64,000 bases of DNA from Chlorokybus atmophyticus (GCA_009103225.1 RHPI01002411.1:1-64000); one strand, 5' to 3'; shown: positions 28,945 to 64,000, counted from the stretch's first letter. A program made the numbers and translations. Notes: generated by a model from the letters alone, not told the origin.

Positions 28945-29985
28945 AAAACCCGACATCGCACATGCAGTTGGAGTGCTTGCGCGCAACATGTCTGCACCAA
29001 GCATGGAGCATTGGCTTGCTGCGAAGGGAGTATTGCGCTACGCGGCTGGAAGCACAAGTGTTGGCATCAAGTTTGGTTGCGGAAGCATAAAGATGGAGGG
29101 CTACTGCAACGCAGACTTTGCAGGTGACCTTGACAGCAGGAGGTCCACTACAGCTTACGTCTTCAAGTTAAATGGAGGCGTGGTGAGCTGGAACAGCAAG
29201 CTGCAACCAACAACAACAGCATCTACTTCGGAGCGGAGTACATGGCAGCATCCGCTGCAGTGAAGGAGGCATTATGGCTTCGCAAGCTGATGGCAGATCT
29301 GGAGCACCCAATGGCGTGTATCACGATCAACTACGACAACCAAGGCGCCATCAAGTTGCTGAAGCACCCCATTGCCTTGACAAGGACAAAGCACATTGAT
29401 GTCATCTATCACTTTGTGCGAGACAGAGTCACACGCAAGGAGGTTGAGTTTCAGTTTTGCAATACAGAAGACATGCTCGCGGACTTCATGACAAAGCCAC
29501 TGTCACCACTGAAGTTCAAGGCATGTTGCACGGGACTCGGCATATGTGCGTAAGCAGGACTAAGTTTAAAGGCCAACCTGCCCGCGTGGGAGTGTTAAAG
29601 ATATTCCTACATCCGGTCAGCCTGCCCTGTATACAAGAGAAGGGACCTCGATGGGAGGACCTTGAAGACTCCGGACATGAAGGTCCTGGCGCGGACTGCA
29701 TAGAAGGGTCCTAGGAGAATCGTCATATCTCCCAAGATACGCAGTCTTATAGGACGTGGCATAGCTTGTTGCAAAGCTTGTCAAGTTAGCTACATGGCAC
29801 ATCTTGCAGCGTAGGATATGGTTAAGCATCGGACGCTGTTGCGTGTAGACCAGCAGTGGGTACAAACTGTGTACTGACTGGCGGGTACATAACCCCGCGG
29901 TCTGTTGGTAATAACATGGGAAGTGTGTTGCCTTCTCCTGTGTGTCATTGCTTGCCCTCTTTGCTTGCATGCTTGCTTCTCAACA
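28945..29985 (+). mobile_element. Copia family B 3' remnant (RT end, RNase H, PPT, LTR 29593-29985); its upstream piece is 19451-19482
   Basis: KPDIAHAVGVLAR...KHIDVIYHF; GCGTGGGAG|TGTTAAAG...TCAACA. The LTR resembles the solo LTR at 51347. Confidence 0.85.
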
Positions 29986-32900
29986 GGCAGGCTACAGTTG
30001 ACGCGCAGACATTCTCTCGTTAAGCTACTCCAAGAACTCCAAGATTATAGGCAAGGTCAGCAACATCGCGTCAAATATTGAAGTGATGTTAACTTCACGG
30101 AGAACTGTAGCCTCGCGCAGAATGCCAGTGTAGTGTGCATCCGCGTTGTGGTAGATATTAAGGAGATTAGCCAGCAAATCCTCCCAGCCTTGAAATCCCT
30201 GTCCACCTGGTCTGCTGCGCTGATGCACATCCCTGAGTTTGATTGAGCGCTGCATGAAGTGATGTTGCCATGCCGCACCCCCTGTAAACCCGATGGTCCA
30301 GCCGGCAAGCATCTGGGACAGACCACCAGCCAGCACGTCGTCACGCTCGCAACTTCACAAGTTTACAAAGTTGTTCGTCACCAGGCGTGCCCATTCTCGA
30401 ATGGTGTTGATGAAGTCATGCGCACGGTGACGTTGAAGCTGCTTGCGTTATTGTTGAAGCTGATCCTGCAGCTGCTTTTGTTGCTGTTGCGCTTGCTGCC
30501 GGTGCTGCTGAAGCTGTAGCTACAGCTCCCACAGATGAGTCCATTGTTGTTGCGGTAGTTGCGGGAGCTGTTGTTTGAGATGGTCTACGTCATCGTGGAG
30601 GGCTTCCTTCTTCGTCTTCGATGATTGTACTTCCCATCTGCGCAATCGTACTGGTCCAGCAGTCTTCTAATGTCGCTTGAAGGCTGTCCAATGCCTCTTG
30701 TCTAGACCGCTCGAGTGCAGCGAAAAACTCCTTAAATAGCATTTGCAACCTGTCAACGTCTCTTTGCGTCTCCCCCAACTGTTGCTGCACCTCTCCCATC
30801 TGCTTCTCTGCTCGCTCTGCTCACACTATCACTTTGTTGACAGCCCCAGTGTCAATTTACGCATGCCCCAGCTGTTGCTCCAACTCTCGCTTGCGGGCTC
30901 GCACCTCGTTCAACTGCTTCTCTGCTCGCTCAGCTCTGTCTGTCATTGCATTGACAATCTAAGTGTTTACAGCCTCTGTAACAGGTTGCGCCGCTTGCTG
31001 CTGCAGCTGGAGTAGCTATTCCCTTGTACGTTGCAGCTCTTCACCACCTTTGGCCTCCTGACTTGAGGAGGATTCAAGCTGCTGCACCCGTTGCAACAGG
31101 CTGGCATTGCGCTGATGGTACTTGTGAAGCACCGCGTCGATGGAGCGCCAAGGGTTCTCTGCCTCTGCCGCTATGGTGGTCATTGTTGCATTTAATGCTG
31201 CAACTTGCAGCTGTGCCTGACGCAACCGCCGGCGCAGACTGTCGACCTCCTCAGCATTTGACTTCGCTGCCAACTCCATTTGCCGCCGCAGCTCCTCAAC
31301 ATTGGATGCCGCTCCCTTTGCTACAGTTCCTGCAGCTGCTGCCGCAGTAGTTTTTCTTCACGAGTGTAGTTGTCAGCCAGCAGCCTACGCTGCCGATGCG
31401 ACTCCTCCACATTGTTGAGAGCACGTTCAAGTTGCTCTTTGCGCATATTATTGAACTTGCGCAAGGACTCCTGCAAGACCGTGTGACTAGTCTGTGCCCG
31501 CTCGTTGGCATCCTGCAGCAGCAAAATAAAAAATGAGTCCACACACAAGCCACTGAAGCATTCCCAACATGCATTAAACTCTGTGATAGTCATCAACGCA
31601 AACCATTGAGGACTGTCATTAGTTTGTGCCAATGCGGGCGCCAACCGTATGCTGCAAGCCCTTGTTGACAGCCCACATAAACCAACAACTACTATCAAGT
31701 GTGTATAAACCGTACCTTTGCTGCAGATGCCACGTTTTGCACGGCTTGCAATACAGAGCCCAGGTCGGCGGCGTGCACGCTATCGGCTTCTTGCATCTTC
31801 ACAAGCGCCTTAGGCTCAGCGCCGGGAGTCAGGTCTTGGGTGACATTTGCAGAGGTAGAGGCGGCTGGCCCTGCGGCGTTCTTGGTGTGGGCGTATTTGC
31901 TGGTGGTGTCGGACCTGCGACAACTTTTCGCAGACGTTCTCCGGACGAAGAGCCTGACAGCTGCAGGGTTGACAGCTGCAAGGTCCCGGTAGGGGTGGAC
32001 TGACCAGTTGATAGCGTGGACAATTGTGGAGTTTCTTGTGTGGCTGCTGGCAGGTTCTGGCGCTGCTTTTTTGATGGTGGTGAAGTAAGAGGAGGGGGAC
32101 CTTCTGTTCTCCTGGCAGGTAGCTTGAGACTGTCAACACGTGGAGGGTCTGGGGCTGGCGTTCTAGTGCCAGCTTGTGTACTGGTACTGGGGGGAGGTGC
32201 CGGTGGGCCATGGGGATTGTGAGGGGGACTGTGAGGGGGACTATCCTTTGGCCTGTTAGAGTGCATGGGCCTTGGACGCATGTTGGCGCGCCCGAGCCAC
32301 GTCCACAGGGGATGCGACTTAATCTCTGTATCACTCATGGGGTTCACAGGTTCAGGCCTAGCAGACACCGCTTGAGCCGCAGTGGAAGGCTCCGTCATGG
32401 CTTCCAATGCACGTGCTGCATCAGCCTCCTCCTTCTTCTCCTCGTACTCAACCTGCTCGTTGACGATGACATGCAGCGCGTCTTGCATCGTCTTGGAGGG
32501 AAACTTCTTCCAGCCTTTGTGAAGAATAGCCGTTATCTTCTTCTCCCAATGCTTTTCCCTTTCCTCCCGCTGAAGTTCAAGCGATACAGCCTGCCGGGTA
32601 AAAGCTTTCTTTGTGGCAGCCAGGCTAAGTGTCCGAGCTTGGTGCGCCTCGACAGTCTTGGTGTAGATGGCGGCCATTTTCTCCTGCAAACACTCGCACC
32701 AAGTTAGGGCTCTGTGTGGAATGTTTGGCGGCCTACATGGCAACGTATACTGGTACGTACACTAAGCAAATTTCTTGTTTAATCTGTAGCTCCAAGTCCC
32801 TTATGACTTGTCTGTGGTCGTCTACTTGTCTGTTTGCTGCCTCTTTCATTTCATGGGCAGCGTCATGCACAGCTTTATAGAAGTGAACAGATATTTGGCG

Positions 32901-33342
32901 CTGAACATGAGCTTTCGGGTCTATCTGTTGATGGACGTGCATACTCTATTGGTTGTTGGCATGCAATGCGCGGTGCAGTTCGATTTGCATGCCAACAGCA
33001 GCCTGTCAGAAGGGACTGACAATGTATATGCACTGCCTCGCTACAAGAGTACATAACTTACCATTGTTTTGGTGCGCTTCAGCTTGACAAGAGGGGGTAA
33101 GCAACCGCCTTAAATACGCCCTGGCACTCTAGCCCGGCTCCCTTAGCGCATTGCTTGTTACAAGCCACATAGCGTCCTCCATGGCCAGCCCCCAGTTATA
33201 TACGAATTTGTGCGCAACATCTTCCGTTCTCCACAGTTGGGTCTGCATCCAAAAGGCCAGTCAGTATTCTGTATCAAATTAACAGTCTGCATTGACAGTC
33301 GAACATGGACAGTTGCCTAACAAGCAAGCTAACAAGCATGCA

Positions 33343-33870
33343 TCAACCACTTACTCTGTCTATCTGCCCATCAGGTGGCCCACGAAAAGGGTCATAGTCC
33401 AGTAGTAGCTCCTCTACTGCCTGTATGTCCTTGATCGCATACACAGTAACAGCTGGCTTGCCGGCGCCATCGAAGTCCGACCAGAGCCTGGCGTTGGGCT
33501 CATGTCGTTGCCCGTGTACGGAATTGATGTAAGCTGCCACATTGCCAGTGCGGGGGTGGCCATCGATGACAACCTGATATTTGTTGGGTGTGTTTTGCAG
33601 GAACAGGTTGACGTGATATCGTCTGTGGTGTTGAAAGCCAGTTGTTAGCTGGCAACTGCGAAAGACATCCCGCTGCTCTTGGTATGTGAACCATTTGCCG
33701 TCGCATGGCATCACGTTCTCCTCTGCAAAGATGTACACAGGTCATCAGTCATAAGCACACAGGTGTACATACAAACACAACGTGCGTATACACGTGCACG
33801 CACCATTTGCTATGTCCTGGCGGGCGAACAGTCCCAATCCAACACCAGTAATTGTGGAGTCCTTGATATC
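33343..33870 (-). pseudogene. SET domain (lysine methyltransferase fold)
   Basis: GxGLFA N-terminal motif, GNxAx[YF]IN, PN and ELLxDY C-terminal motifs. Confidence 0.88.
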
Positions 33871-35480
33871 TCAGTTGTGCAGGTGATACTTGAACTCCTC
33901 TTTGACCGGAATGCTTGTGGATGCTTTTACATCCTTCAAATAGTTCAGCCACCACAGCTGGTGCTTGTCTCCAGCTCCACGATGAATGAGCTTCAGGTTG
34001 GGAATCCCATTGTTAGTCTGTTTGAAGCAGTGGTCAGTTGCAATGCTTTGAGAGCCACACAGATAATAACAGTCTTGCTTGACAGTCCTTTAAGCAAAAA
34101 GCGGGGGGGGGGGGGGGGGGGGGGNGTTGCAATGCTGTGAGAGCCACACAGATGACAGTCTTGCTTGACAGTCCTCTAAGCCAAGGGGGGAGGGGGGGGA
34201 TGCAAGACATATGCTTACCCTCAAGTTGTCGTCCGAAAGGTTGGGTGGCTATGTGGTGCCCGTGGAACTGTAGCAATTCATTTCAAACCTCTGCATCTCT
34301 TGAAAAGCTGCACGGAACTCTTCTTTGGGATCCACCGCAGGACCTTTGCCGTGTTGCTGTGCGGAGGAACTGTGCAATAATGGACTTGTTGAGACATCTG
34401 CAGTCTCCGCCGAGTCTGCCTCCTCCCTTACTTCCAACTCCTGTTGTTGCTGCTGCTGCTGCACCTGCTGCTGCGCCTCTTCCACCTTCAGCTGCGTTTT
34501 GCGAGGCCAAAAGGCACACGGCTTGACGTTGAAGGACCATGCATGGTCCTTTCACGGACTCCGCGGACCATGCATGATCCGTACCCCGCGGGCCAGGACT
34601 GCCTGGTCCGCGGGGGACGGACCGTTCCTGGTCCATTCGGGGCCCCGCGGCCCGTCAATGGCTGGCGCGGCGACGCGCACCACGCATGATCCGTGCCGCA
34701 CCATCCATGGTGCGGCACGGACCATTATGTATCCTGGCCCTTGAATGCGGACCAGGTGCGGTCCCGCAGTCCTGTGGCCCTACAAGGACGCACCGTACAT
34801 GGTGCCGCACGGTCCTCGCCGCACCATGTCCGGTGCCGCACGGACCAGTGACCGCGGCCCTGCCGCTATCATGAGTAGGTACAATAGATTGCCTAAATAC
34901 CTGATTGCACAAGTGCACTTAACGTGTTAATTGACAAGCCGCACCGACTGTCGGCTATACACCCGTGGACAGCCGCAAGTGGATAGCCGCAAATGGTCGG
35001 CGGCTGATTGACAGCCGGCCGGCTGTCAATTAAGCTGTAAGGGGCTGTCTATGCAATCACCATACTTCATAGTACCGTACGTGTATTTGCAAAAATTTGT
35101 GGACATGCACCATTAACATGTTCTTTGCGTTTGTTTAAGTACCTACGTATATATGAACATTATACATGTGTATACGTCAATGCATTATGTCTCATATAAA
35201 AAAATATATATATAATATATAAATGTTAGCGTGTGCACAAATGAATCTAATCTTATACGCATAGATTCGCAGGTTTAAATGGTTATATCAGTAGTATTTA
35301 AGTTGAGCCGTATACAAGGTATGTCTTATGTAAAATTATGTATAAGAAGTATACATAAATGACGTCACTTATTATAATAGCCTCTTATGAGACCGCAGAA
35401 TGCTTGACAGCCCCGACCAAGCATTGTGTACAACCAACTAGTAAATACCTATGTTGGTGCCGCAATGCGGTTTTAATATT

Positions 35481-35520
35481 TATCATGTAAACGTATATAT
35501 ATATATACGTTTACATGATA
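35481..35520. repeat. Perfect 40-bp palindrome in an AT-rich tract
   Basis: TATCATGTAAACGTATATAT|ATATATACGTTTACATGATA. Confidence 0.95.
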
Positions 35521-36979
35521 TAAATACTATATACACGAATGCTTACATATGTACACATGTAGGTGTGTGTATGCGCACGCAAGCAGGATGATATTGACAA
35601 CCCCAAACAAGGTTACATACTCATGAGCAGCCCCCAACAAAGCATTGTAGTTTACACACCTTGGCAGCCGCCGAGTTGCGGCTGCCTGTGTCATCAACAA
35701 TGACGTAAAATAATGTGATACCGTGGATTAATACTGGTACAGCCTATGCACATTGATAGCGCATGCACTGCCTATCAGCCGGTGGGCACAGAGGGGTGCC
35801 TCTGGCAGTTATTAACCTGTGGTGAAGATGTATCCAGTGACGTGTTCAGCTGTGGAGACGTCGATTTGTGTTGTGAGTGGGTGTGACAGTGTGTGTTACT
35901 TTGTGAAAGGCCGTGACGTGAGGTGTGTGAGTTGGTGTGCATCGTAGTGACGACATGTGCGTTATTGTGTGCCGATCTGTGACTCAGCGTGCTTGCAGTG
36001 TCAGAATATCGGTGTGATGGTGTGTGATGTGGTGTGATGTCCTGTGCCTGCGCGTTTAGGGTTTGCGGCTTTCGCGCTCGTGACAGATTTTGAAATGTGT
36101 CGTGCTGGGCAGGGTGTAGCTGGGTGGGGGTGTTTGTTGTTGTTGTTGGTGGCGGCGTAAGCGGCGGCGGGGGCGTTGGCGTGCGGGTGCTTGGGTGGTG
36201 CGGTGGTAAGGTGGCGGTATAGGTTGCCATGGCCATGCGGGGTACGCCCGGTCGGCCCGTCCTGGGGGGGGTAGTTACAGGCAGGTATATCTGGACGGCG
36301 CCAAGAGCGTTGCGTACTTGGATGGCGGGCGACGCCGTGAGTCTGACGATCATGTCGTGGGTGTGGGCGAGGGGGGTGGTGTCACTGCCCGTGGTGTTAG
36401 TTTTCCTGGGGGGTTAGAGGTGATGTTGACGACTTGGGTAGACCATAGACTCTACTTGCCTCGTGATGTCCGAGACTCCCCTGTGAAGGTCATGTCGCCT
36501 GTGCTCGCTGTTGATGTCCTGAGTTCGGGCATGCATCCAGATGTTCGCCTCAAGTTGGCCTTGCGTGAGCGGGCTTGGGGTGTGTCTGGGGTTGATCGCC
36601 GGATGATTGTGCAAGAGTACATGCCAGAGTCATGGCTGGGCCTAGTTCCAGGCATGTGGCAAGTACATGACTCGTATGATGTGCCTATGCGCGAGCATTC
36701 TGAGCATGCCTGGCCTCAGCGAGGCGTCGTCCCCCGTCCGTGTCCCTTCCCCACGTCGTAAAGGTATGCTGGGGCGGCTGTAAAGTTTAAACAGCTGAAT
36801 GTTGCTCAGTTCTGAACGTTGCGTTGTTTCCTTTGCTGCGCAGGCCCTGAGGTTGTGTTGTGACAGTGTCTAGGAGTGAACATTGTTGTCCCATTGTTAC
36901 ATGACTTGTGTGCATGCAGCCTGTGCAGTTGCATTTGTGTGCATGTTTGTATATCTGGCATGCACATGATGGTTGCCAT

Positions 36980-39900
36980 TTAGCAGTCTAGGTCGTCAAT
37001 GTCTAACTGTTCTACTAATTCCACCCAGTCTTGTGCATTGGCTGCATTTGTCTCCCAATCCCCACTACCTGCTCTGTCATCTTCTGCGTCCTCAGCAGCT
37101 TCCATTTCTGGGCTGTGTTCTTCTGCCTCTGCCTCGTCTCCAGAAGTTTCGGCTTCCCCCTCGCTGGAGGAGGAGGACGAATCTAGGTCATACATGCTGT
37201 CATCGTGTTGGGGCTGACCCTGCGTTGTGGGCATGGATGGTGTTGTGGGTTCTGTTGTGTCAGCTGGTGCCTGGGGTTTGTTCCTGTTGTTGCAAGTGGT
37301 GCACTTGCAGCTGTTAGTACACGGAATCCCTGCGCGCTTGCAACGGCATTGCTTGTTGCTGCACGATGACTTCGAACAGCCGCAACCCTTCAATAGAAGA
37401 AGCCGCCGTCCTCGCGCTGCAGTCATGTTTTCAGGTGTGTCCAGGTGTGCAACCCACACATTGTCCTGCTGTCTGAAACCATGATCTGATAACGGTGCTG
37501 TCATCAGGTGCTGCCTAGGAGCTTGAAGCCACATCTTGACCACCCAGCATGCACGCTTGCAATGCAACAGCAGGGCTTCAACTGTTGGCATTCGGTCATC
37601 TTCCTTCCAGATGGTATGCCATGTTGCATCGTGGATTGCGGCCAACCACTGGGTGAGTGTTGGGATATCATGCTTGCTGGCATTGGCACCACAGGTGTCA
37701 TGAAACAATGCTGTTGGGCTGGGACACTGGAAGTGTCTTGCGTGTTTCCTAAAGTAAGCACACCCAAGCAATCGCAGCAGCATTGCCTCTGGTGTCTGCA
37801 GTGCCATGTCTCGGGTGAGGAAGTCTGCGTCAGTACCTGCTACGGTTTGCCATAGCCACACCTTGCCCATGCCAGCAATGTAGCTCGTGTAGTCGCTGCC
37901 AGTGGCAGCAAAAAACAGCATGATGTAATGTCCAATGTCCTGGCTGGGCGTGTGCGTCAATTGTTGTTGATGTGTTAAGTCCGACAGGAGTTGGTTGAGT
38001 TGGATGAAATGTGGACGGGTGGATGATGCTCTTTCACGGCTGGTCTGGACGGTGACTACTTTGGACTGCAGCATACCTTGCTGCATTGCAGCCAACCCGA
38101 TGATGGTGATGTCGGTGTCAGGTGAGTAAATCACCACCCTGTCACAAGTGCTGTTTTCTGCATGAAACCACACCCTACTGTCTGCTTCGCAGTGGTTGCA
38201 CTCCAACGTAGAGTCTTGGCTGATGCTCACTTGATCTCGAAGGCGTTGCAGCACGCGGGCACCATGTCGGTATTGCATGTGGTCGCTGCCTCCAGACAGA
38301 ATGAGCTTCTGGCCGTTGCGCAGCCATGCAGCCGCATAGGTGGGCAAGTGTTCTGTGATGAATGAGCACAGCTCACGTTTGGCACTTCTGTTGTTCAGCA
38401 GCTGGGGCCACCTCGCTGGGAGTGCCTTTTCTAATCCGATCACAATCTTGTCTGTGTCACCAACATGAGCGCCATCTCTTCTGGACTGAAGGCTGGACTT
38501 GACGCCAGTTGCATGGTTGGGGTCGTCAAACACGATATGTACTTCTCGGATACTGTCAGCAGCAAAGCGAGGGCGCAGGTGGTTCCTGACCAGCTGCTGA
38601 AGGTAGTCTCCATAGTTGCTGATAGTGTCTGCGGGTGCTTGTTGTATGATGAACATGCCCTCAGTGATATAACACTCGGTGCCTGCAGGGAAGTGTTCTG
38701 CGCAGGCTTCTGGACTGCACTCAGCAAGCTTCCCAAGGAAAGCAGCCTTGCTACCCTTCCTCATGTTGCCTTCAACGTCAAAGAGCGCTCGAGGCATCTC
38801 CAGGTACCTCGCAGTCAGGTGTTCTCCAGGCATGTCATTGGATGCGAGCTTTCTCATTACTTGTGCATGGTCCTTGGCCACCCTTCTAGCAGTTCTGGCA
38901 CTATTGCCTTTATTGCTTATACTCGCCATCGTTCTAAGGTTGTTGCGCTTGACTTTAACCACGCCTTGGTTGCTGCAATACTTTGCTTGCACGTAACCCC
39001 TAAATGCCTCGACCCCAACTCTGTGATGTCTACCCAAGTCAGCAGCAGCACCAGGTTTGGCTGTGACATCCCGCACCAAGTGTCGCAGCTCCATGTCATG
39101 CTCAACCATCAGGTGAGCGGCGCTGTTGATGGTTTCAGTCATGTGGGTCACCGTGCTTAGTGTCCGCTTGTAATCGAACTCTGGGAGTGGCCTGGGGGGT
39201 GGTAGCACTTGCTGATCAAAGTTCTTCATGCTGGCAGCACGCGTTGTCAGGTGTAGAGTCTTGCGGCGTAGGTACTCCTCGCTGGGTCTGCTGATGCACT
39301 GCTTGAGGTCGCGGTTGATCACGATTTCATGCGCCTCGTCGCAAGCTACGCTCGCAGCCCAGCGCCCATTGATGGACACTGCAAAGTGCCCATCATCAAG
39401 AAGTTGCAGCACACTCAAAGGCCATGTTCTCAGGTCTGTCAGATGACTGCTGAACACCCTTTGATAATGTGGCCTGTCCCAGGCAAATGCAAGTGGAGCG
39501 AGCATCTTAATGGATGCACAACGCAGCTGCCAGTCACTGGTTCTGGTGGCAAAGTACAAAGCCACATAAGGTAAACAGTCACGTTGCGTGAAGTGCCACC
39601 AGAATGCCCATGTGCTGTCCCTCTCTGCTCTTGCAGAACCATATGCCAAAAACTCTGTGTAATAACTGATGGCTGCACTGTCGCTCGTGCTTGGCTGAGT
39701 GTTCAATTGCTGCCTCTCCAAGAATCGCTGGTAGTGGTCAGAGGCCTCAAAAGCGTCAAGCTGTGCACGGAACACAGCTTCAAAGCCCTGCAGGAGGAAG
39801 GAGTTGTTTCGCTTCCAGTTCCTCCCATCCACCAGAGCATTACGGGCTGTTGAATTGGCAAACCCAGCGCTTGGGGCCAGGCCATCCAAGCCAGCGTCAA

Positions 39901-42900
39901 AGAAGATCTTCAACACCACAGGCTGCATGTTGAACAGCACATGCCAGTCACCTATCATTGGGAGAACCCAATCCCAAAAGCCGGGCTCCAAGGCCTTGAT
40001 CTCCAGAATGAGGGCATATGTCTTCTGATCTCCCGCTATCATCATGCAGGTCATGCCAGATGGCTCTAACACTTTGGCTTGTATTTCAGCAAGTGCCAAT
40101 TTCAGATGGTCGCGCTTGTCCGGATTAATTGGCAAGAGGGGTAGGAAGTGAATGGATGAGCGAGGGCGGGCAGCACACAGGCGCAGCGCAGCGTATTCAT
40201 GCTTGAGGGTACGTGACTGCTGGCCTGTTTCTGCACGCCTCCCCTTGATTGCTTGAAATAAGTTTATGTTGAAGAGGTCCAGTGCTGCTTGCTCTGCATC
40301 ACTCAAGTACACCACCAGGTCCGGAGAGGGCAGCGGCACAAATCTTCTTGGGGCACTCACCATTGGCCGCTGAGGGTCCAAGTCCATTCTGACTTGGATG
40401 CCAGCCTCTCTCAAGGTACGCCATCTCACAGGCTGCCAATATCACCCATGTCAATTGCCATTAGGCACTCGTACACACATGCATTCATACTCAGAACCAC
40501 CGTTGCAGTGCTGACCTTGGCAGCGCTGACGTCTGGCTGGAAATCTCGTTGTTCTTGAGGCCATGTAACGACTGCCTGTGTGGTGGTACAGTGCATGCCG
40601 GTGGATGACTCCTTGCCCATGAACATAAGTGTGTGAGATTGCTGAAAGTCCAGATTGTCTATACTGCACATGACCAGTTCGTTGTGGTGCAGGCCAAAGT
40701 GAAGGGGTGCAGTTGCCAAGGACATGGTTCGCGTGGTCACATGCCTATGGGATCCACAGCATGTATGGTAAGTTGCCATTCAGTCAGCGATATGCCCCTA
40801 ATCACATACAAGTTGCATTGCAACAGGCCTGGCTGACCTGTTGAGCGTGTAGCGGCTCACACATAACCCTAGTCGGTTCAGCATGTGAATCAGTTTGGGT
40901 TTGGCACCGCACCCCTCCACATAGTTTGCCAGGACCAGGTGCAACTTGGAGTATGCCTTTGGGTTGCGCGCATAAATTGCATTAGCATACAACACTGCTG
41001 TCTGACTTCTCATGACTTTCAGGCGATCCTTGATGTTTTCATCGTCACATCCAGCTCGCGCAGCCGCTCTTTCCGCAGTCTCTAGTCCAGTGATGGCCTT
41101 CAACACCGTGACGACATCCTCTTGTCCATCATCCAACTCTTGCCTCATGTCCAAAGACCGCCAATCAGGCGTGCCTTCTGCGTTAGTCTTAGTCCTGGCC
41201 ACTGCAGCTTGTTGCACACACTTGCTGAGATGCCGCAGCAGCACGCCATTGACAACCCCTTCGCTTTGCGTGGGGGTTCCACCTGACTCTTTCAGTTTGC
41301 GCAGGACCCAGCCACCATACACAGCCTTCGCCAAGGCACGTCCGTGATCGGTACCCCGCACCAGCAAGACTGTACCTAGCCTTGGAGATCCAGTCAGAAG
41401 CTCCAGAGATGTACCAAAGGCCCGCTGCAGTGCGACAGACAACATCCTGGAGGTGACTCTAGAGCGCGATGCCAATTCTTGCAGCAACACAGCGCCATCT
41501 TCATCTTGCAAGTCTCTCGCCACTACTCTGCAGGCCTCTGCAGTAGGTCCCTCCTCGACTAGCGCATCTGCCACCTCCCTAATCTTTGTGACTGACTCCC
41601 GCCACAACCCAGAGTTGTATGCAGATTGCCCACTACCACTTCGGCGCAGCCTGTTCTGCATATCTAGCAACTCTTTCTTGTATTGATCGATCATTGACCT
41701 GCTAGCTGTGAGCTGTTCACTTGCACGTGTACACTCAAGCCGGCACCTTCCTAATTGACTATGTAGAGCACATACATCCTCCACACTTTTGGCCAACTCA
41801 GCTTTCACATTCTGAGCACGCACATACAAGCATGTAAGCTGCGTGCTTTGCCATATGAAACATCACTTTCACTTGCACTGTATTACCTCTTGTTGGCTGC
41901 ATGCATCAGTCAAGGAGTGCTGCAACTGCTCCACATTGCACGCTTGTTCACACATGATTAAACGCAAACTGCATGACTCCGTAGTAGCCTCGTTGCACAT
42001 GCGTTGCCACTCTGCACACCTATCGCAGACATGCCCATCTGCATTGCCTGCACAGCACATGCAATGTCAAATGAAGCACACAGATTATCAACATCCAGCG
42101 CGTTACAGTGCACACCCTAACACTAACTACACTACATGCCTGATCCCCAATGGCCGCTAGAATGCTGCTGGGAAGACTGCGATTGATGCAAGTTGGTGCG
42201 CTCTCCTAGAGGGGCTCTAGGAGTGAAAGGTGGACCCATGTCGGGTGTGAAGCCAACAGAACCAAGAGGGACAGTTACCTCCACATATTGACCCTGTATG
42301 CAACATAATTATAACATCAGCCACAACACAGTATCACAGCAATAGCAACTACCCAAAATCTACTGCAGTCTCAACACCCTCTCCAACATGCACTTACAGC
42401 GTCATTGCGTATCATCACTTTCTGGAACCCATGTGCCCGCCCTGCCGCACTAGGAACTGGAGTCTGAGGAGTGACTCCACTCATAGTTGGCAGCGCTGCA
42501 GGGACTGATGGACGCTCAACAAAGTCACCCTGCAACATACATTTGCCACATTAATTTCAGTGATCACATCCCACGCCTCCATCAAGCCACAAAGCTCCCA
42601 CAATCATAGCATGACCCACTATCACAATGCAACAACTACACGCACAACATACACACCTCGACTTGTTGGAAAGTGTCGTTACCCTTGTCATACCTCCATT
42701 TCTTGCCACTGGTTATTGCATTAAACACCACATGGTAGGGCAAACAAGTATCATGCAAGCTACAATCACGCCGGAGAGCATGCATCATGTTGTCCTCCTT
42801 CTGCTTGGCGGCCACCCTAACAGCCTTCTGGTTTTCCGCATGCTTCCTCTTCTTCTTGTTCTTCGCCTCAGTCCCAGGAGAGGTACTGGCCTCCGTGCCA

Positions 42901-42989
42901 GCCTCTTCAAGCGGCATCGTGTGCTGTGTACACTGGACCCCACCAGCCCCCTCGCCAGGAGAACTCTGCGCCTGCTCAAACTGATCCAT
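36980..42989 (-). CDS. Academ-type transposase with XPG/PIN nuclease and Cys-rich finger; 7 exons, ~1810 aa, apparently intact
   Basis: Exons 42989-42657, 42529-42398, 42293-42140, 42047-41887, 41811-40838, 40744-40516 and 40432-36980 splice in frame (one GC-AG intron). Motifs LNRLGLCVS, IDNLDF, GDQKTY, GDWH, CDEAHE; VFDD, HCEADSR, DTDI, GSDY; CGCSKSSCSNKQCRCKRAGIPCTNSCKCTTC. Confidence 0.8.
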
Positions 42990-43467
42990 GCCGCCGCCAC
43001 ACTGCCACCGCGGCTCCTCAACAAAATTCAAAAATCATCCCGCGCGCACGTCCAGAGCACGCACAGCTATGCACGCATGATCACAAAACTTCACGTATGC
43101 TCACAACGAGATAGAGCTCAGCATTTCACACAAAGGCACACGATCTCACACCGAATTACGTCCATCCCACACCACATCGAGCACACGAATTCACAAGTCA
43201 TCACAACATAACTCACACTTACTCACAAAGGTTCACAAGCTTATCGCGATCTCACAACGGCCCACGGACCATCGTGGCCATCGATTGCCAAATAAGCAGC
43301 AACGGCCGATGTCTAATCCTTTGAGCAGGACCCCTCTGTGCCCACCGGCTGCTATGGGCCTGTCAATTCACAACGCCGACTTCCTGTGCAATTTCCGCCG
43401 CCGACAGTCGCCAAGCGGCCGTCGGTACAGTCTATTATGCAAGTACTGCACCGTCCCTACCGGTACG

Positions 43468-43541
43468 TGCACATGTAGCTTAGTGGTTAGGGTGTCGTGT
43501 TTGTATTCCAAAGGTCTTGGGTTCGACTCTCGGTGGATGCA
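43468..43541 (+). pseudogene. Degenerate tRNA-like sequence (anticodon position TGT, Thr-like) or SINE head
   Basis: A box TAGCTTAGTGG and B box GGTTCGACTC at tRNA spacing; stems pair poorly. Confidence 0.55.
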
Positions 43542-44779
43542 TGCGTTCTTCACTAATCATGTCTACGACGCCGCGGCCTCGCGCGCTGCAGCCTGCGGCC
43601 CTGCAGGTCGGGCGTGGCCGGTGCTGCCGGCTCAAGATAGAGCACTTTCCGTCATTTGCATTACATCTAATGCTTATGAACAAATATTGCGGTCAATGGT
43701 CCGCTGGCCGGACCAGTAATGATTGTTAAACTAAATGTTTTTGTTAAGTCCCTGGTCCGCTGACTGGCTCGTACCTGGTCCTGACGCGACCGTAAACAGG
43801 CCGGAACAGACATGGTGCGACCCCAAAAAAACATGGGACCGTTCACGTGAGTTTTGGACCATGCATGGTCGGACTGTCAATGACAGTCCAACCAGACATG
43901 GTCCACGGAATTCACTTAGCAGGGGAAAATCCCGGTTCGAGGGTACGGACCATTTATGGTCCTTTGACGTCAATCGGTGTGAGGTATACTGCCTTGACAG
44001 CCGACCCGCTTCATCCCACATTCCTTGCGTCTGTAACCTTGAGTTGCATGATGCGATGATTGATGTAAAACTGCATCCACTCACCCATCCTGTGATGGCC
44101 ATGACTTCTGCCATTTTGTTGTACTTCAGCACCGCGACCCTTTGATGAGGGTGGGCCGGGTATTGATCGTTCTGCAATACGCTGCTGGTGAGTTTCTCGT
44201 GCAATGGAATATATAGCGCAAATGTAAGTTAATAACAAGGTTTGTAGAACAAAATAACACCATGCGTAACAAGTGACATGCACAGGTTCCCAGCAGCGAC
44301 TGTCAATGCGCTGCGCGATGCGCCATACAGCACAGAGCATTGACAACCTGGGCATGTCGTTAACAATTTTGATTTTTGAACGTTTTTACCTTGATGGCTT
44401 TCTAGAGTTCAAGCCCCATAGACTTGCACGCATCCTGGTCCTCCCTACCGCCTCCGTAGTTGATTGTGCGCACGACTCGGCACACCTGCGTGTTGAAGTG
44501 CTGTCCGATTTTGGTGGGCTTGGTCTCTCCCCCAATTGATTGACCCCTTGCATCACGGTGACCAGCTTGCACATTGCACGAACAGAACGGGCAGCCCCAG
44601 ATAAACGGCGACCCTGTGGACGCCCGCCTTCGTTTCAAAATGTCCAACTGCCTGGCAATCCTTTCCAGCGACTGTGTTGTACAACTCCTCACAGCTCCGC
44701 ACACCTCTCGTCGCTTCACCCTGCGCCCTGAGCTACACCCACACCCACACCCACAACCACAACCACAACCACAGCAACA

Positions 44780-47700
44780 TGTTGTAGGACTAGCATGCAC
44801 ATGTAGCTGAGGCAAGCATAGACACACAGAGACAGAGCTACCGCCATCAGAGCATACACAAGTCACATCACATTCATTTGTTACAAGTTGTCCGCTGGTT
44901 CTTATACCAGCCAGTTACACACACGTCTACGTTTGCAAGCATTGCGTAAGCTATACTTAGCTTTTTGACGCGCTCTAAGTTGCGTTGTCTTTCTTACAAC
45001 TAGAGCTTTCCAACAAGGTCTTACACGCCTAATATGAGTAAGTATACGCGGAGATACAAAGCAGTTAGTAAGGCTCTAGTCTGGAGTCCGGAGCCTGGTC
45101 CGACGACGCCATCTTGCTAAGTCCGGACCTAGTGCTCGTCCTTACGACCTTCTACTCCTGTGTGGAGGGTCGATGCTGATCGTATGTAGGAATACTCTCA
45201 ACACTCCCACGCGAGCAGCTTGACCTCCAACGCTTGCTTTTATTGTTAAACACAAATGCCAAGTCCTGCGCAACAAGTCTTGAACTTGAGCGGTGACAAT
45301 GGCTTTGTCAGTAAGTCCGCCAGCATGCCCTCGGTGTTGCAGTACTGGAACTCCACCTCCTTCCTTGTGACTCTGTCACGCACAAAGTGATGCATGACAT
45401 CAATGTGCTTCGTCCTTGCTAAGGCGATAGGGTGCTTCAACAACTTGATGGCTCCTTGGTTGTAACAATTGATGACGATGCACGCCATGGGGTGCTCCAA
45501 GTCTGCCATGAGCTTACGAAGCCAGAGTGCCTCCTTCACTGCTGCTGCCGCTGCCATGTACTCAGCCTCTGATGTAGATACTGCTGTTGTTGGCTGCAGC
45601 CTGCTGTTCCAGCTCACCACGCCTCCGTTCAGCTTGAAGATGCAGCCTGTAGTGGACCTCCTGCTGTTGAGGTCACCAGCAAAGTCCGAGTCGCAGTAGC
45701 CCTTCAACTCAATGCTCCCGCTCCCAAACTTGATGCCAACTGTTGCGCTCCCAGCAACATAGCGTAGTACTCCCTTGGCTGCTCTCCAGTGCTCCATGCT
45801 CGGTGCAGACATGTAGCGAGCAAGTACTCCCACAGCATGTGCAACATCGGGACGTGTGCACACTGCCAGATAGAGCATGCTGCCTACCAGCTCACCATAT
45901 GGATACAGAGCCTTGTCGAGTACGTCCTCATCCTTTGCCTAGATAAGGGCAATGCCAAGTGCCAACGGTGTGGTCTTGGTCTTCGCTTTAGTGAGCCCGA
46001 ACTTGGTGACGAGTCTGCTCACCATCTGCTCATGACTGATCTTGATTGTGCGAGCAGCCCTGTCGCGCTCAATCACCATGCCAAGGAACCACTTGGCCTC
46101 TCCAAGATTACGGACTCAGAATGCTTGCTGTAGAGCAAGTTTCGTCTCCTGCAGGTGGTGCACCTGCCTGGCGGTGATAATGATATCATCAACATACACG
46201 AGCAGCCAGACCTTGTTGTCTGCATGGATGAAGAGCTCAGGGTCTGCAGAGGATGCGGTGAAGCCAAGTGCCTCCAGCTCCTTGGTGAGCTTGATGTGCC
46301 ACATACGCGGTGCCTGTCGCAGCCCGTACAATGCCTTGATCATCTTGCACGCTGTGCCTCTCTCCCCTTCCTCATATCAAGGTGGTTGCTCGATGAAGAT
46401 CTCCTCCTCCAGCCTTCCGTAGAGGAAGGCAGTTTTCACGTCGAGGTGATGCAGCTTGAGGTCCTCAGCAGCAACCACAGCTAGCAGTGCACGGAAGGTG
46501 GTATGCTTACTTGCAGGTGCAAACACTTCGTTGAAGTCCACACCTTCCTGCTGCAAGAAGCCCTTTGCCACCAGTCTTGCCTTGTAGCGCTCAATGTTGC
46601 CCTGACCATCACGCTTCACCTTGAAGACCCATTTCACTGGAATGGTCTTCACTCCTTGCGGTAACTGCTCCAGTGACCAAGTGTTGTTTGCATGGAGTGA
46701 CGCAATTTACTCGTCCATAGCACGCTGCCATTGCTCCGCATTTGGTGCTAACAATGCCTCCTCGTAAGTGCTTGGCTCCTCATTCTGCACACTGGCGACG
46801 TGTGCCCTGTGTAGGAAGTCAGGTGCCTTTCTCTCCCTCACAGGGTATCTTCGAGCTGCGTGCTCCTGCTGCAGGTGCGGCTCCTTCTGGCCTGCTACAA
46901 TCGAGTCTCGCTCACCCTTGTCGTTGATGACTGCCTCGCCCTCAGCCTCCACTGTCTTAGGATGCTCTGTGGCTGTACTTCATCGTCATCTCCCGGAAAG
47001 AAGCCTGCTTTTGGTTGTGATAATCCCTAAAAACCACCTCTCTGCTCACGATGATCTTTTGAGTGTCCTCGAGCAAGATCCTGTAAGCCTTGGAACCCGG
47101 TTCATAGCCAACGAAGATGCCCTTCTTGCTGCCCGGCTTCAGCCTGTGCCTGAGCTGTTTAGGCACTAATGCACATGCCGTGCATCCAAACACACGCATA
47201 CCACTCACATCTGGTGTGGCTCCATAAAAGTGCTCCCACGGAGTCTTCTGCTCTGAGCTCACCGGAGACCTGTTGTGGATGTAGTTGGCAGTGAGTACCG
47301 CCTCCTTCCACAAACTGTCTTCCATCTTTGTGTCGTTGAGCATGGCTCCAACACGCTCCAAGAGTGTCTTGTTGAGGCGTTCAGCTGCTCCATTCTGCTG
47401 CGGGGTGTAGGGTGCCGTTGTCTCGTGGCGTATGCCCTTGCTAGCGAAGAACTCCTTCAACTTCTTGTTGATGTACTCCCCTCCTCGGTCACTCCTCATT
47501 GCCTTCATCTTGTTGCTAGACTGCATCTCCAACAAGGCCACAACTGTGCGCACAGCTCCAGCAACTTCTGACTTGAGCGTCAATGGAAAGATGATGGACA
47601 GCTTGCTGTAGTCGTCAAGAAATGTAGCAAAGTACCTGGCCCCTTCGCCACAATGCGCATAGAGCCACAAACATCAATGTGCACAAGCTCGCAAGGATGC

Positions 47701-49675
47701 TAACTGCTAGAAGAGGATGATGGGAATGGCATAGTATGCTGCTTTGCAACCAGGCATGGTTCACAAAGTGCACCTGATGCATTCTTGAGTTCTTCAGTGC
47801 TGAGATGGATGCCCTTGACCATCTTCTCAGCGACAAGGCGAGTGAGGTTGACGTAGCTGAGATGCCCGAACCTTCGATGCCACAATGTTGGCGACTCCTT
47901 GTCCTTCACCACCATGGCTTGAATGTCAATGTCCTTAGGGTGCTGCTCCATGTGGTAGAGCCCTCCCGGATCAGCGATTCGAACCATGTGCACGACCCCA
48001 TCAAGGATGACTGTGCAGCGACCCTTCCGAAATAGGATCTCCGCGCCTAAGCGCTCCGCAACCCTCACAGAGAATAGACTACCAATAGCTTTAGAAACAT
48101 GCAGGACGTTGCGTAACAACACCTCGCGTAGTGTGTTACCAACCTTGCACTGGAGTCGTACGTTGTCAACTCCCTCAGCCACCAGTACTTCGCCACCTTA
48201 ATTGTGGACGTCAGCTTGCTGTAGCCCTCCATCACCTCCTTGTTTGGTGTGAGATGACGATCGCAGCCAGAGTCCACCATCCAGAAAGCTGTGCCCGCCC
48301 TCGAACTTGATGCAGTGAAGGCGACATGTTTCTCCTTGTGTTGGTGCTCGTTGCCGCTGTTGCTGGTGCTCGCACTAGGTTGCCCCTGTTGTTTCTTCCT
48401 ACAATCCTTCACAATGTGCCCCTTCCAACCACACCAGTGGCATGTGAGGTCTTTGTGACAAGGATTGCCCGGCTTGTTGCCCTTGTTCTTCTCCTCATGG
48501 TTGCTCTTCTTCCCGTGCTTGTTGGTGTGGAAGGCCACGGCATCAGCTTGCTCGTCCTTCTTCATCACCCTCTGCTCTACGGTGAGCAGCTTCGGTAGTA
48601 CATCGTCCAGCATCAGCTCCGATGACAATGTCTCCAGCAGTGTTGCAACGACCTCGTACTCTGCTGGTAGCCCTGCAACAACAGCCAGCACAACCTCCGT
48701 CTCCCCCATGTCGTGGCCGACGTTGATAAGGTCCGCCCACAGCTCTCTCGCGCGTGCAACATACTTTGTGATGGGTTCTGCTGCCTCCTTCCTGAGTGCA
48801 CTCAGCTGCTTGCGTAGCTGCAACTTTCTGGCGTTGTTCGTGGCTCTGAAAACGGCTGATAGCTTTTCCCAAGCTTGTCTACCATCTTCACATGCAGTGA
48901 GCATGGGAAAGTGATGCCGTTTGCAGTTCAACACAAGCAAAGAGTGTGCTTCTGAATGCTCTGACCACACAGTGTTCGCTTCTGGTAGTGGTGGTGGTGC
49001 CTTCGGATCAACGTACTTCCACATCTTCTTGTGGATGAGCAAGGCCTTCATCTCCACACACCATGTGTTGTAGTTGTCAGTGTCCAGCTTTGCAATCTGC
49101 CCCTTGTCGTAGGTCGCCTCCACTTCTGTCGAGCCTGCCTTTCTTGCAGTTGACACCCAAGGCTCTGCTACCAACAAGCTACCGTAGTGTAGAACTACTA
49201 TGCACACAAGCTAGTCTCACACTCCTCAAGCGTAGTGTGGGCCCATAATATGTTGTAGAACTAGCATGCACATGTAGCTGAGGCAAGCATAGACACACAG
49301 CGACAGAGCTACCGCCACCAGAGCATACACAAGTCACATCACATTCATCTGTTACAAGTTGTCCGATGGTTCTTATACCAGCCAGTTACACACACGTTTA
49401 CGTTTGCAAGCACTGCGTAAGGTATACTCAACTTTTTGACGCGCTTTAAGCTGCGTTGTCTTTCTTACAATCAGAGCTTTCCAACAAGGTCTTACACGCC
49501 TAATATGAGTAAGTATACGCGGAGATGCAAAGCAATTAATAAGGCTCCAGTCTAGAGTCCGGAGTCTGGTCCGACGACGCCATCTTGCTAAGTCCGGACC
49601 TAGCTGCTCGTCCTTACGACCTTCTACTCCTGTGCGGAGGGTCGATGCTGATCGTATGTAAAAATACTCTCAACA
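44780..49675 (-). mobile_element. Full-length but decayed Copia family A element
   Basis: LTRs 44780-45203 and 49251-49675; TSD CAACA on both sides; mutated PBS; gag-pol broken into fragments; start ATG reads GTG. Confidence 0.95.
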
Positions 49676-50308: not shown

Positions 50309-52920
50309 TTGGGGAGGGCAGCCAAATGCCTGCCGCAACAGATCAAACGAGGCCAAGGGCAACAATTTGCTGGGTCAGGTGACAGGTCAGCAGTTCTTGA
50401 TGAAGGAGGAGTACAAGCATATGCCACAACGCTGATTGTCAACCTGGAGAAGCTGAAGAAGAAGATGTCGAGCAAGTGGCCACTACCTCAAGGTATGAAG
50501 GGCAAGGACTTCAAGATGAATGCTGAGCACCGGCAGGAGCTCGACGAAGTATGCCAGGCGGTCTTGCAGCAGTCACTTCCATTGGTCTTTGACACAAACC
50601 ACTCGCTCATGTGGACAAAAGGTGAGCTGCTTTCTTGATGACATGTGATCCTTGAATGGAACCTGAATTCAGTTGTGTTGAAGTGAGTTGTAGCATATCG
50701 TTCAGCTTTCAGTTCACTATGTCTGCTTAGCAGTATTGCCGTTGACAGTCCTTACCCTAGTTGCTGTTGCTGTGTTCGTGTTTATTGCTGTGCAAAGTTG
50801 CTCTCAGTGCCCAGTTGCAGTATGCTGTCTTTTGTTAGCTAGCAGCTTGCAACAGCTGAAAGTGCTGTCTGGGCATTGTTTTGCTGACAGTCCTTGCCCT
50901 GGTTGTTGTTGCTGTGTTTGTGCTTGTTGCTTCAGTGACCAGTTGCGATATGCTGTTTTTAAGGATGTCTTCTGCTAGATGGTAACTTCCAACAGCTGTA
51001 AGTGTGTCCTATATGGAGTTGTCTTGCCATTGACAGTCCTTGCCTTTGGTACTTTGCTGTCTCGTATCTGCTTGTGTTGCAGCACAAATCAAGCAGTATG
51101 TGCTAGTGCTTCGGTACATCGTTGGCGCGAAGCGCGGCAGTGGTACCAGGAACTGCGTCTAACAACACAACGAGGCCAAGAAGCAAAGGCGTGCCAGCGA
51201 CATGGAAGCTGCACAAGGCAGCCGCGCTGCTCAAGCTGAAGCTGGCTGGGGCATGACATTCTGTCTTGGGAAGGACATGAGGGCCAACCAGCAAGTGGTC
51301 ATGCTGGCGCCTTTGACCGCTGAGCCTCTCATAGACGCACGGTACCTGTTGAGGGTATTCCTACATCTAGTCAGCTTGCCCTTTGCATAGGAATACACGA
51401 GAGGACCTCGATGACTCCGCACTGGGTCCGGGCAGGTTGCAAAGCAAGGGCTTACAAAAACCGTTGGATCTTGGTGGATACGGAGCCGAATGACACGTGG
51501 CGTAGCTTGTTGTGTAGATCTTGAAGTAAGCTACGTGGTGCAACGTACAGCGCAAGATTCGGTTAAGTGTATCGTACGGTGTCTCTTGTAGATCAGCAGT
51601 GTGTGTATTTGGTGCAGAATCTGGCGGGTATAAGACCCGCGGACTTGTTGCCTTAATACAAGCTGTAGTGTGATGTAGCATGTCACCCATGTGCATGTGC
51701 TTGTCAACGTGTTTATGTCAACAGTACCGGGCCACTTGGCTAAAAGAGAGGTAAGCAATCATGGTGATGCCGACTGTCGATCATGTTATACTGTTGCCTC
51801 CATACTGGCTTCACACATGGTGCCTGCTACTCTGCATGTCACGACAAGGGTGCGGACGGATATGCTGAAGATCAGGTGTTAGACATTTGCAACAACGCGG
51901 TTGTTGTTGGCGTTGCCACCATTGATTCCGCATGCGAGCCAAACCAATGCGCACGTATCTAGTCTCTGTTAACTATTGGATGGCAGTGAGAAGCGAGGAT
52001 GACAACCTTGCCGTTCAACTACATGTGAAAGAGAGGCATCTTCTCTATGGCATGCTGGCAAGCAGCCGCCATGGTGGGCGTACTTTGAAGGTACATTGCT
52101 TGCTGTGGATATGCACGTGCTCCAACTATGACTGTACGGTGGAGTCCATGAGCATATCTTATGTTAAACACAACAACATGCAGGTTAGGGAAATGGAGTG
52201 GCCCATGATGTTCTTGGCCAACGGAGGCATCTGCCCCTATGAGGTATGCTAACGATGAGCGCATTGCGTTGCCTGGTTGCATCAAGAACCTACTGCCTAC
52301 GCCCGCAGGCAGGCACAGCACGGACACGGAGGTTAATAAGGGCTGTTGTTAGGCTGCTGTCACATGATGGACAGTCGCAAATGCAGTCAATTGATCACGT
52401 CTTAGCAGTCGCAGATTGCAATGCATGTTGCCGTTCTTGACAGACATCAACGCATTGCATTGCGAACTGTTAACAAAATTGACGATCGCCAATGCATTTA
52501 ATTAATTCTGTTATGACAGTCGCCAAGGGACTGCACTGACCACTCTGGGTCCTATGCAGGTTGCTGGGGCGATCTCTGACTGTTAAAATGGAAGAGCCAC
52601 CGCCATGGACTTGCCAATTGCAGCGGGGATTGTGTGCATCATCAAGCCCAAGGCCCCCACCAGAGAGGAGGCAATCGACATGTATGAGTACTACCACCAC
52701 ATCGAGCACACGCTGTTCCACAATGGTCACTAGCTGGCACTTAAGGACCCTGACCGAATGGAGCGTGTGCCAGACGAGCTGATCTTGCGAGCCATTGTCA
52801 GCTTTGCTATCAGGAAAAAATGGTTGGTGTCTAACAAAGATGTTGAAGGAGGGTGCGAGTGGGGATCCAATTGCAAACATTCCACGTATGCATACTTCAC
52901 TGCAAAAAGCTAACGACAGT
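50309..52920 (+). pseudogene. Unidentified multi-exon gene remnant
   Basis: Protein-like exons bounded by GT/AG (e.g. ...HSLMWTK|GTGAGC, CAG|VREMEWPMMFLANGGICPYE|GTATGC) with stops and an LTR insertion; no family recognised. Confidence 0.4.
51347..51723 (+). mobile_element. Solo LTR (Copia family B-like)
   Basis: TGTTG...TCAACA with 5-bp TSD GTACC on both sides. Confidence 0.92.
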
Positions 52921-53620: not shown

Positions 53621-53946
53621 GCATGCGCTGAGTGTTTGCAAGAGATGCTCTCGAGCAAGGCGGTCGCGGGTGTCTTCACATTGGGGCTGAATTAACCCAG
53701 GAGAGCACAAGTCTGGCTTTCAGGCGAAGGTGCTGGCAACACAACAGACTGATGTTGTTAGCTGCTCATGTTTCCTCCTGTAACCGCAGCGTGAAGTGCA
53801 TGCAGGAGAACTGTAGCTACAGTCTCACTGGCTTGACACTGATAATGGACTGTAATGGACTGTCAAACGACAGCCCATTACGGCATTTTGTGAATTGCAT
53901 GCGTGTCGGATTGTATGCACCAGGCGCGGTGCAGGCACCAGTGCAG

Positions 53947-54400: not shown

Positions 54401-54566
54401 ACAATGTTAGTTTAAACAAAGACTTCCGGTCCGTACCCATGGACAGTGCATGGTGCGACTGTCAATCACTAAACATGTGAAAGTAATAAACCATGCCTGG
54501 TCTTCTGCGCCAGGGGGCATTGCACCATACATGATCCTTGCAACCTCAAACAAACAGGTCACCATA

Positions 54567-54737
54567 CATGGTGCGACCCCCAAAAAACATGGGACCGTTC
54601 ACGTGAGGTTTGGACCATGCATGGTATGACTGTTAATGACAGTCCGACTATATATGGTCCACCCATTTTCACTTGGCAGGGGAAAATCCCGGTACAGAGG
54701 TACGGACCATTCATGGTTTCTAACGTCAGTCAATGTG
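54567..54737. mobile_element. Right terminus of a second element of the 34515-43981 family
   Basis: Closely parallels 43811-43981 (CATGGTGCGACCCC..AAAAAACATGGGACCGTTCACGTGAG..GCAGGGGAAAATCCCGG..TACGGACCAT) and ends ...CAATGTG. Confidence 0.8.
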
Positions 54738-63942: not shown

Positions 63943-64000
63943 TGTTGAGAGTATTCCTACATACGATCAGCATCGACCCTCCGCACAGGAGTAGAAGGTC
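63943..64000 (+). mobile_element. Start of another Copia family A LTR inserted in the SET exon
   Basis: TGTTGAGAGTATTCCTACATACGATCAGCATCGACCCTCC matches the family A LTR start. Confidence 0.95.

Follow-up and report, generated by a model that had tools for sequence, protein, structure and literature searches.

What kind of gene once occupied positions 30025-34514 of this stretch, whether it is still intact and what carried it are the questions raised by a 64,000-nucleotide piece of the Chlorokybus atmophyticus genome (GCA_009103225.1 RHPI01002411.1:1-64000), which is referred to below, at its full length, as the window. The window is eukaryotic, intron-bearing and transposon-rich, with copies and fragments of Copia retrotransposons over much of its length. 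An initial interpretation made from the DNA letters (the sequence-only reading) had placed at this locus a highly diverged paralog of a gene found at 59185-64000 (paralog 2), and had proposed for both copies the same layout, i.e., a SET domain, a coiled coil and a C-terminus resembling the KEN ribonuclease domain. The locus proved to be a multi-exon gene remnant on the minus strand, running from 34514 to 30025, whose SET domain is split by a canonical intron. It is considered here, with a probability of about 80%, to be a dead, anciently diverged paralog of a transposon-carried SET/coiled-coil gene.

Exon 3 (33722-33355) matched the Pfam SET family PF00856 with an E-value of 1.3e-7 (32.4 bits versus a cut-off of 22.4), and the N-terminal half of the domain, with the GxG cofactor motif ITGVGLGLFARQDIANG, lies in the preceding exon (34017-33804), which is joined in frame to the C-terminal half by an intron of 81 nt. 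The catalytic tyrosine of the ELxxDY motif is kept (EELLLDY, 33414-33394). The canonical NH(S/C)xxPN motif was not found; it reads YINSVHGQRHEPN here and FLNSSRDTQYKPN in the other copy, with Asn kept and His replaced by Ser. The domain had been described as complete across two exons, which holds for the two-exon layout, given the Pfam match and the in-frame intron, and fails for intactness, as exon 2 carries a TGA (33873-33871) located 19 codons upstream of the GxG motif. A phmmer search with the SET exon against PDB recovered no solved SET structure at an E-value of 0.01. The unusual IDGHPRxGN motif that had been noticed in both copies is indeed common to them (IDGHPRTGN at 33567-33541 and IDGHPRYGN at 63892-63866), and no further IDGHPR match turned up when the window was translated in all six frames.

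Homology tests and searches were all carried out exon by exon, on unjoined sequences. A profile built from the SET C-half exons of both copies and searched against 1.84 billion representative proteins yielded nine weak matches (best E-value 1.8e-5), and the same profile detected no relatives in viral contigs and metagenome contigs. The nearest outside matches combine an IDG[HR]P..G motif with the N-S change; the IDGHPRxGN-type motif is therefore a trait of a small and scattered SET subfamily and not of the two copies alone, and, because the same relatives have it, the replacement of N-H by N-S is likewise a subfamily trait and not a sign of decay. Among these proteins, P0007 is 32% identical over 114 residues, including DG+WF, IDGxP, GN[IV]AxYINS and EELLxxYDPF, and P0005 is 41% identical over 70 residues, including VIDGHPRHGG. 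P0007 (165 residues) is encoded on a 38.9-kb metagenome contig together with giant-virus-type families (EsV_1_7_cys and DUF5901); at L001:8668-12855 its gene adjoins a TnpB/Cas12f-like gene and a Methyltransf_24 gene, with a weak JmjC match 3 kb away.

The relationship between the two copies within the window is visible at the protein level; a DNA-level comparison of both loci found nothing in common beyond simple repeats. The SET C-halves (33600-33364 and 63925-63689) are 43-44% identical (43% over 79 residues by tblastx, E-value 3e-19), with a Smith-Waterman score of 192 versus a shuffle mean of 26. The following exon, whose homology had been proposed from GLAMEDAMWL.. versus GVALEDGAYL.., was confirmed as homologous to 63592-63194 (score 60 versus a shuffle mean of 24.9, p 2e-5), and the stop that had been marked in it is the TAG at 33131-33129. 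One more block, absent from the earlier list, was found in the frame at 32945-32736, which aligns with 63281-63063 (score 79 versus a shuffle mean of 24.6, p 1.6e-7). All three blocks are collinear in both copies, and the intron after the SET C-half interrupts the same aligned residue in phase 0 in both (AGA/GTAAGT here and CAT/GTGAGT in paralog 2).

Over 193 aligned codons, the third positions are 22-36% identical, which equals random expectation, and the number of synonymous substitutions per site (dS) according to NG86 is undefined through saturation, whereas the nonsynonymous value (dN) is 0.57-0.77. Of the dN/dS comparison that the sequence-only reading had suggested, only dN could thus be obtained, the ratio itself not being computable. 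As 31-44% of residues have been kept between the copies while synonymous sites became saturated, the alignments fit a pair of old paralogs whose protein sequence would have been under selection for most of their separation, and the suggestion of an old, diversified family with little DNA similarity is borne out by the three significant protein blocks, the common intron and the saturated dS. Further downstream, the 310-codon frame shows no significant similarity to paralog 2 (p 0.2), and the coiled-coil frames match the long rod of paralog 2 with p-values of 0.008-0.025 only, which is read as a compositional effect because both sequences are charged, repetitive and helical. The proposed common layout is supported for the SET domain and the exon after it; the match of the rods appears compositional, and the KEN-like tail is not supported. 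By these comparisons, the conserved core of the family consists of the SET domain together with the two linker exons and does not include the tail.

The copy at this locus is a dead pseudogene, with eight or nine in-frame stops and an Academ-type transposon inserted in exon 1 (Table 1), a state that the sequence-only reading had missed. The inserted element looks complete; its terminal inverted repeats of ~35 bp start with CACAC (CACACGGCTTGACG..) and are 83% matched, and the trinucleotide AGG is duplicated on its two sides (34512-34514 and 43982-43984). An intact open reading frame (ORF) of 1149 codons (40429-36980) in the element matches Pfam DUF6589 and a Tesmin/TSO1 CXC (TCR) domain, and a second ORF of 343 codons (41829-40798) matched no family. 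The 3-bp duplication agrees with the target site duplications of 3-4 bp reported for AcademX elements (PMC10045372). The subterminal DNA of the element is full of the palindrome GGACCATGCATGGTCC. When the element and one AGG copy are removed, exon 1 can be read on without a stop for a further ~80 codons, reaching into 43985-44227, and therefore the transposon landed inside the gene. Position 34514, which had been taken as the start of the gene, is the edge of this inserted transposon.

Four exons (exons 1-4) are fixed by their splice sites. The length of intron 1 is uncertain, since the intron contains a tandemly duplicated 81-nt unit, a run of C and one N (34125). The two repeat units (34037-34199, 85% identical) flank the poly-C/G run and the N, and this is probably an assembly-uncertain spot. 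Between exon 4 and the frame beginning at 32945, no in-frame closure with canonical splice sites was found in either copy. In the coiled-coil region, the last 314 codons form a single frame that is predicted to be coiled-coil throughout and contains five internal stops. An in-frame tandem repeat of 114 nt (38 codons) lies in this rod at 30966-30901 and 30852-30787 (DRAERAEKQLNEV and AERAEKQMGEV); internal duplication has thus lengthened the rod, and the rod of the other copy seems to have grown likewise. A TGA (30357-30355) parts the tail from 30 open codons that share its frame. As an alternative, an intron of 74 nt (GTGCGC..AG, 30425-30352) would link the tail in frame to the Ala/Thr-rich stretch, and this candidate intron would bridge both the ninth stop and the frame change before the tail.

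Table 1. Coordinates of the gene remnant, its in-frame stops and the mobile elements around it (a slash marks an exon/intron boundary)
Feature	Position	Strand	Remarks
Exon 1, 5' part (probable)	43985..44227	-	cut off from the rest by the nested Academ-type element; candidate ATGs inside
Nested Academ-type DNA transposon	34515..43981		9,467 bp; splits exon 1; not part of the gene
Exon 1, 3' part	34219..34514	-	Gln/Glu-rich N-terminal region; TAG 34251-34249; donor AGG/GTAAGC
Intron 1	34018..34218	-	201 nt, GTAAGC..CAG, phase 0
Exon 2	33804..34017	-	pre-SET region and SET N-half (DIKDSTITGVGLGLFARQDIANG); TGA 33873-33871
Intron 2	33723..33803	-	81 nt, GTGCGT..CAG; joins SET N-half to C-half in frame
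Exon 3	33355..33722	-	SET C-half: IDGHPRTGN, YINSV for the usual NHSC, EELLLDY; stop-free
Intron 3	between exon 3 and exon 4	-	112 nt, GTAAGT..CAG
Exon 4 (the "following exon" of the sequence-only reading)	33062..33242	-	homologous to 63592-63194; TAG 33131-33129
Open frame	32736..32945	-	homologous to 63281-63063 of paralog 2
310-codon open frame	31832..32761	-	charged helical stretch, then Pro/Ser/Thr-rich low-complexity stretch
Coiled-coil-like region	30416..31779	-	two overlapping frames; Ala/Thr-rich stretch at end
C-terminal tail	30025..30354	-	109 codons and TAG stop; WQHHF, FQGWEDLL, IYHNADAHY
Stop TAG	34251		exon 1
Stop TGA	33873		exon 2
Stop TAG	33131		exon 4
Stop TAG	31018		coiled-coil frame
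Stop TAG	30961		coiled-coil frame
Stop TAA	30859		coiled-coil frame
Stop TGA	30823		coiled-coil frame
Stop TGA	30592		coiled-coil frame
Stop TGA	30357		before tail, with frame change; possible ninth
3' long terminal repeat of diverged Copia fragment	29593..29985	+	ends 39 nt past the stop codon of the gene; not part of the gene
Full Copia retrotransposon	44780-49675	-	429-bp long terminal repeats 94% identical; 5-bp CAACA target duplication; upstream of the SET gene
Second Academ-type right end	54552..54737		84% identical to 43794-43981 over 189 bp; faces the SET gene

The strings WQHHF, FQGWEDLL and IYHNADAHY that had been pointed out in the tail are present (30354-30028), and the codon of the His before the Asn is CAC. 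Tail-against-tail comparisons gave BLASTP E-values of 0.13-2.2, a Smith-Waterman score of 35 versus a shuffle mean of 27-28 (p 0.05-0.1) and semi-global z values of 0.4-1.7 with two matrices and two gap settings; adding the 30-codon upstream extension brought no gain, and over four kinds of alignment test the p-values ranged from 0.05 to 0.3. The best local alignment pairs WQHHF..LRDVHQRSRPGG with HHY LRDINQRRAENG, and not IYHNADAHY with IRNTAHHY, and the W..N...HY alignment proposed earlier scores ~26 (hand sum of BLOSUM62), close to the mean of shuffled sequences. Sequences that are unrelated, or that have diverged beyond detection, would be expected to yield such a pair of mutually incompatible, chance-level alignments. 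Homology of this tail to the RNTAHHY tail of paralog 2 is less likely than not; the rarity of N...H[YF] and the common spacing of a Trp before it, given below, are a reason to entertain it and not evidence for it. Searches with a word index, using this tail and that of paralog 2 (residues 440-616), found no homologues.

One explanation of the tail, less likely than not, is that the two tails are homologous and represent a helical end domain specific to this lineage, which is not KEN but might be remotely related to HEPN, and whose similarity has fallen below detection. In both of the paralogous genes the tail comes last and follows a coiled coil; the semi-global alignment contains small collinear anchors (GL.Q..A, AW, W.., N...HY and LR..N), and the pre-tail sequences IREWARLVTNNFV and VDEWMRVVVEDFL match with a p-value of 0.015. 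However, no test of the tails themselves was significant, four gaps are required to line up the anchors, an intron may cover the pre-tail match, and, with an unalignable rod before it, the tail might just as well be a replacement of unrelated origin. The same explanation may draw on the ESM Atlas, in which neighbours of the tail include clusters of the HEPN families Hypoth_Ymh and Csm6 at 0.85-0.88, with low recognition and below the 0.9 line, so that they rank as a lead only; the tail of paralog 2 fell among unnamed clusters. A single-sequence AlphaFold2 (AF2) model of the tail is all-helical, with a mean predicted local distance difference test (pLDDT) value of 44.2 and a predicted template modelling (pTM) score of 0.28, which is too poor for inferring a fold.

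With regard to the carrier of the gene, a second Academ-type right end faces it, with no other gene in between; upstream, beyond the nested element, come the full Copia insertion and a solo LTR, followed by ~5 kb of non-coding DNA that run to this end. The motif TGACAGYC occurs 33 times in the window versus 8.65 expected, and nearly all copies lie in non-coding DNA of the SET/Academ-type block (30838-54644), eight of them in the SET-gene locus, including its introns, and most of the others in Academ-type non-coding DNA, including the subterminal parts of the nested element. From this arrangement, the gene was likely cargo of a larger Academ-ended element with its right end at 54737. The right ends at 53940-54737 and 43794-43981 are each preceded by arrays of the palindrome ACCATGNATGGT and by GGACTGTCA motifs. 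Many of the TGACAGYC copies occur in the form TTGACAGTCC, for which a transposase binding site and a relic of a small repeat are candidate roles. Beside paralog 2 lies an ORF with a sub-threshold Transposase_21 match.

Copia elements also border the locus on both sides. The long terminal repeat (LTR) ending at 29985 cuts off whatever followed the gene. An RNase H fragment (28949-29592) directly adjoins this LTR, which belongs, together with an apparent solo LTR at 51347-51750, to a diverged relative of Copia, the two LTRs being ~67% identical to each other. The possibility that this LTR truncated the tail exon was rejected, since it ends 39 nt beyond the stop codon, and the similarity between 29593-29907 and 51347-51650 was likewise rejected as a pair of element ends, since both are LTRs of this relative. 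At least five further copies or fragments of the full Copia element at 44780-49675 are present in the window.

An ordinary host gene that was hit by Academ-type and Copia insertions, and from which (or from whose kin) the transposon-borne copies were derived, is considered unlikely as an alternative. It would account for the normal multi-intron structure, for the lack of a left transposon end flanking the gene in the window, and for the nested Academ-type element, which was demonstrably inserted into the gene and is not its carrier. It would leave aside the Academ-type end at 54737, which faces the gene with no gene between, and the TGACAGYC motifs seeded through the introns; in addition, the only clear relative in the window adjoins a transposase-like ORF, and nothing similar was found among the 1.84 billion representative proteins.

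Several points weigh against a dead paralog of a transposon-carried gene, in whole or in part. No left end matching the right end at 54737 was found in the window, the only left end in it being that at 34515, and cargo status is thus inferred from one end and a common motif. Some of the stops could fall in unrecognised introns. The gene model was read from the sequence of a single copy of this subtype, its chain of exons beyond 33062 is provisional, and exon-by-exon comparison, as noted above, applies to all of the homology results. Finally, the NH to NS change may put in doubt the enzymatic activity of even the intact copies.

The identification of the tail as a KEN ribonuclease of the Ire1/RNase L type, homologous to the RNTAHHY tail and deprived of its Arg by a CGC to CAC change, is very improbable. 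Apart from the HEPN-type neighbours mentioned above, this idea could appeal to HNADAHY and to a Trp located 13 residues before the Asn in both tails, with matching Ala at +5 and Leu at +7, as well as to the rarity of N...H[YF], which occurs six times in ~128,000 six-frame residues of the window, two of the six being the two tails (a post hoc count). A CAC derived by CpG decay from CGC is possible and chemically sound, being a CpG transition in a locus with a CpG observed/expected ratio of 0.63 and an excess of TpG/CpA; the whole window is equally CpG-poor (0.67). On the other hand, neither tail matched Pfam KEN (PF06479), any HEPN family or any other Pfam family, and neither retrieved an IRE1 or RNase L chain in a PDB sequence search, in both cases at E-values up to 10. 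The catalytic R-N-x3-H is not present, as HNADAHY has His at the position of the Arg, and the candidate site likewise lacks the Arg of the HEPN motif Rx4-6H, which marks a helix start in a four-helix core. In Ire1 and RNase L, dimerisation is driven by a kinase or pseudokinase domain located upstream of KEN. Nothing kinase-like was found ahead of either tail, and a Pfam scan of the open frames of the locus gave no kinase match, and SET and coiled-coil pieces instead. The competing chance-level alignments speak against KEN, and the AF2 model is too poor to lend it support. As far as these searches reach, the KEN-like C-terminus is not supported, as the tails align significantly neither with each other nor with KEN profiles, which the sequence-only reading had itself named as the outcome that would overturn it. 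Two independent occurrences had also been taken to exceed a chance motif. As the second occurrence is statistically indistinguishable from chance, one piece of the apparent support for the KEN ribonuclease idea falls away.

A still wider proposal, highly doubtful, is that one ancient family (divergent SET, linker, rod and end domain) was carried independently by two unrelated superfamilies of DNA transposons, CACTA and AcademX, and that its tail is an RNase very remotely related to HEPN, which has lost its catalytic Arg by decay in this dead copy. Such elements would then supply an enzyme that marks chromatin and, with it, a module that cuts RNA.

If the locus is indeed a dead paralog of a transposon-carried gene, its intact ancestor would have encoded a protein of roughly 1,200 residues, which would begin with a Gln/Glu-rich N-terminus and continue with a divergent SET domain of the lysine-methyltransferase type, in which the GxG motif and the catalytic ELxxDY tyrosine are kept and N-S replaces N-H. 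The conserved part encoded by the two linker exons would come next, then a rod with Pro-rich and coiled-coil parts, and a small helical domain would form the C-terminus. Judging from domain content only, this protein most plausibly acted as an element-encoded methyltransferase on a lysine of a histone or of some other chromatin protein, and the rod would have served oligomerisation or reach.

Chromatin enzymes encoded by transposons are attracting interest at present, and a survey of eukaryotes lists fusions between chromatin genes and transposons, SET genes included (Grau-Bove et al., bioRxiv 10.1101/2021.11.30.470311). Against this background, the present locus shows that the SET/rod family is old, with at least two deeply diverged subtypes, and the subtype found here appears to be tied to an Academ-type element. 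A dead copy says nothing on function.

Compared with known systems, the locus resembles the KEN domain of Ire1/RNase L (PF06479, HEPN superfamily) in having N-x3-H-Y in a helical C-terminus (R-N-x3-H-Y in paralog 2), and differs from it in having no profile or sequence match, no upstream kinase or pseudokinase and no arginine. Its likeness to SET methyltransferases (PF00856) is closer, comprising a domain match above the cut-off, the GxG motif, the ELxxDY tyrosine and association with mobile elements, whereas the NHxC cofactor motif reads NSV at this locus and cysteine clusters are absent both before and after the SET domain. Unlike the SET fusions associated with transposable elements, the gene described here is a separate one, which stands beside a transposase and is not fused to it.

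The nearest outside proteins (P0007, P0005 and P0001; E-values of only 1.8e-5 to 3.2e-4 against the whole library) are small SET proteins with IDG[HR]P..G[NG].(A/G)GY.N, but each comprises a single domain, with a length of 133-227 residues and neither rod nor tail. Paralog 2 differs in that the rod at this locus is much shorter and not alignable with its own, the tail here is without Arg-Asn and not significantly similar, and the copy here is far more broken. Nevertheless, the two copies have in common IDGHPRxGN, N-S for N-H and EELLxxYDPF in the SET domain, the phase-0 intron after the SET C-half, two homologous following exons, a charged helical rod and a small C-terminal domain.

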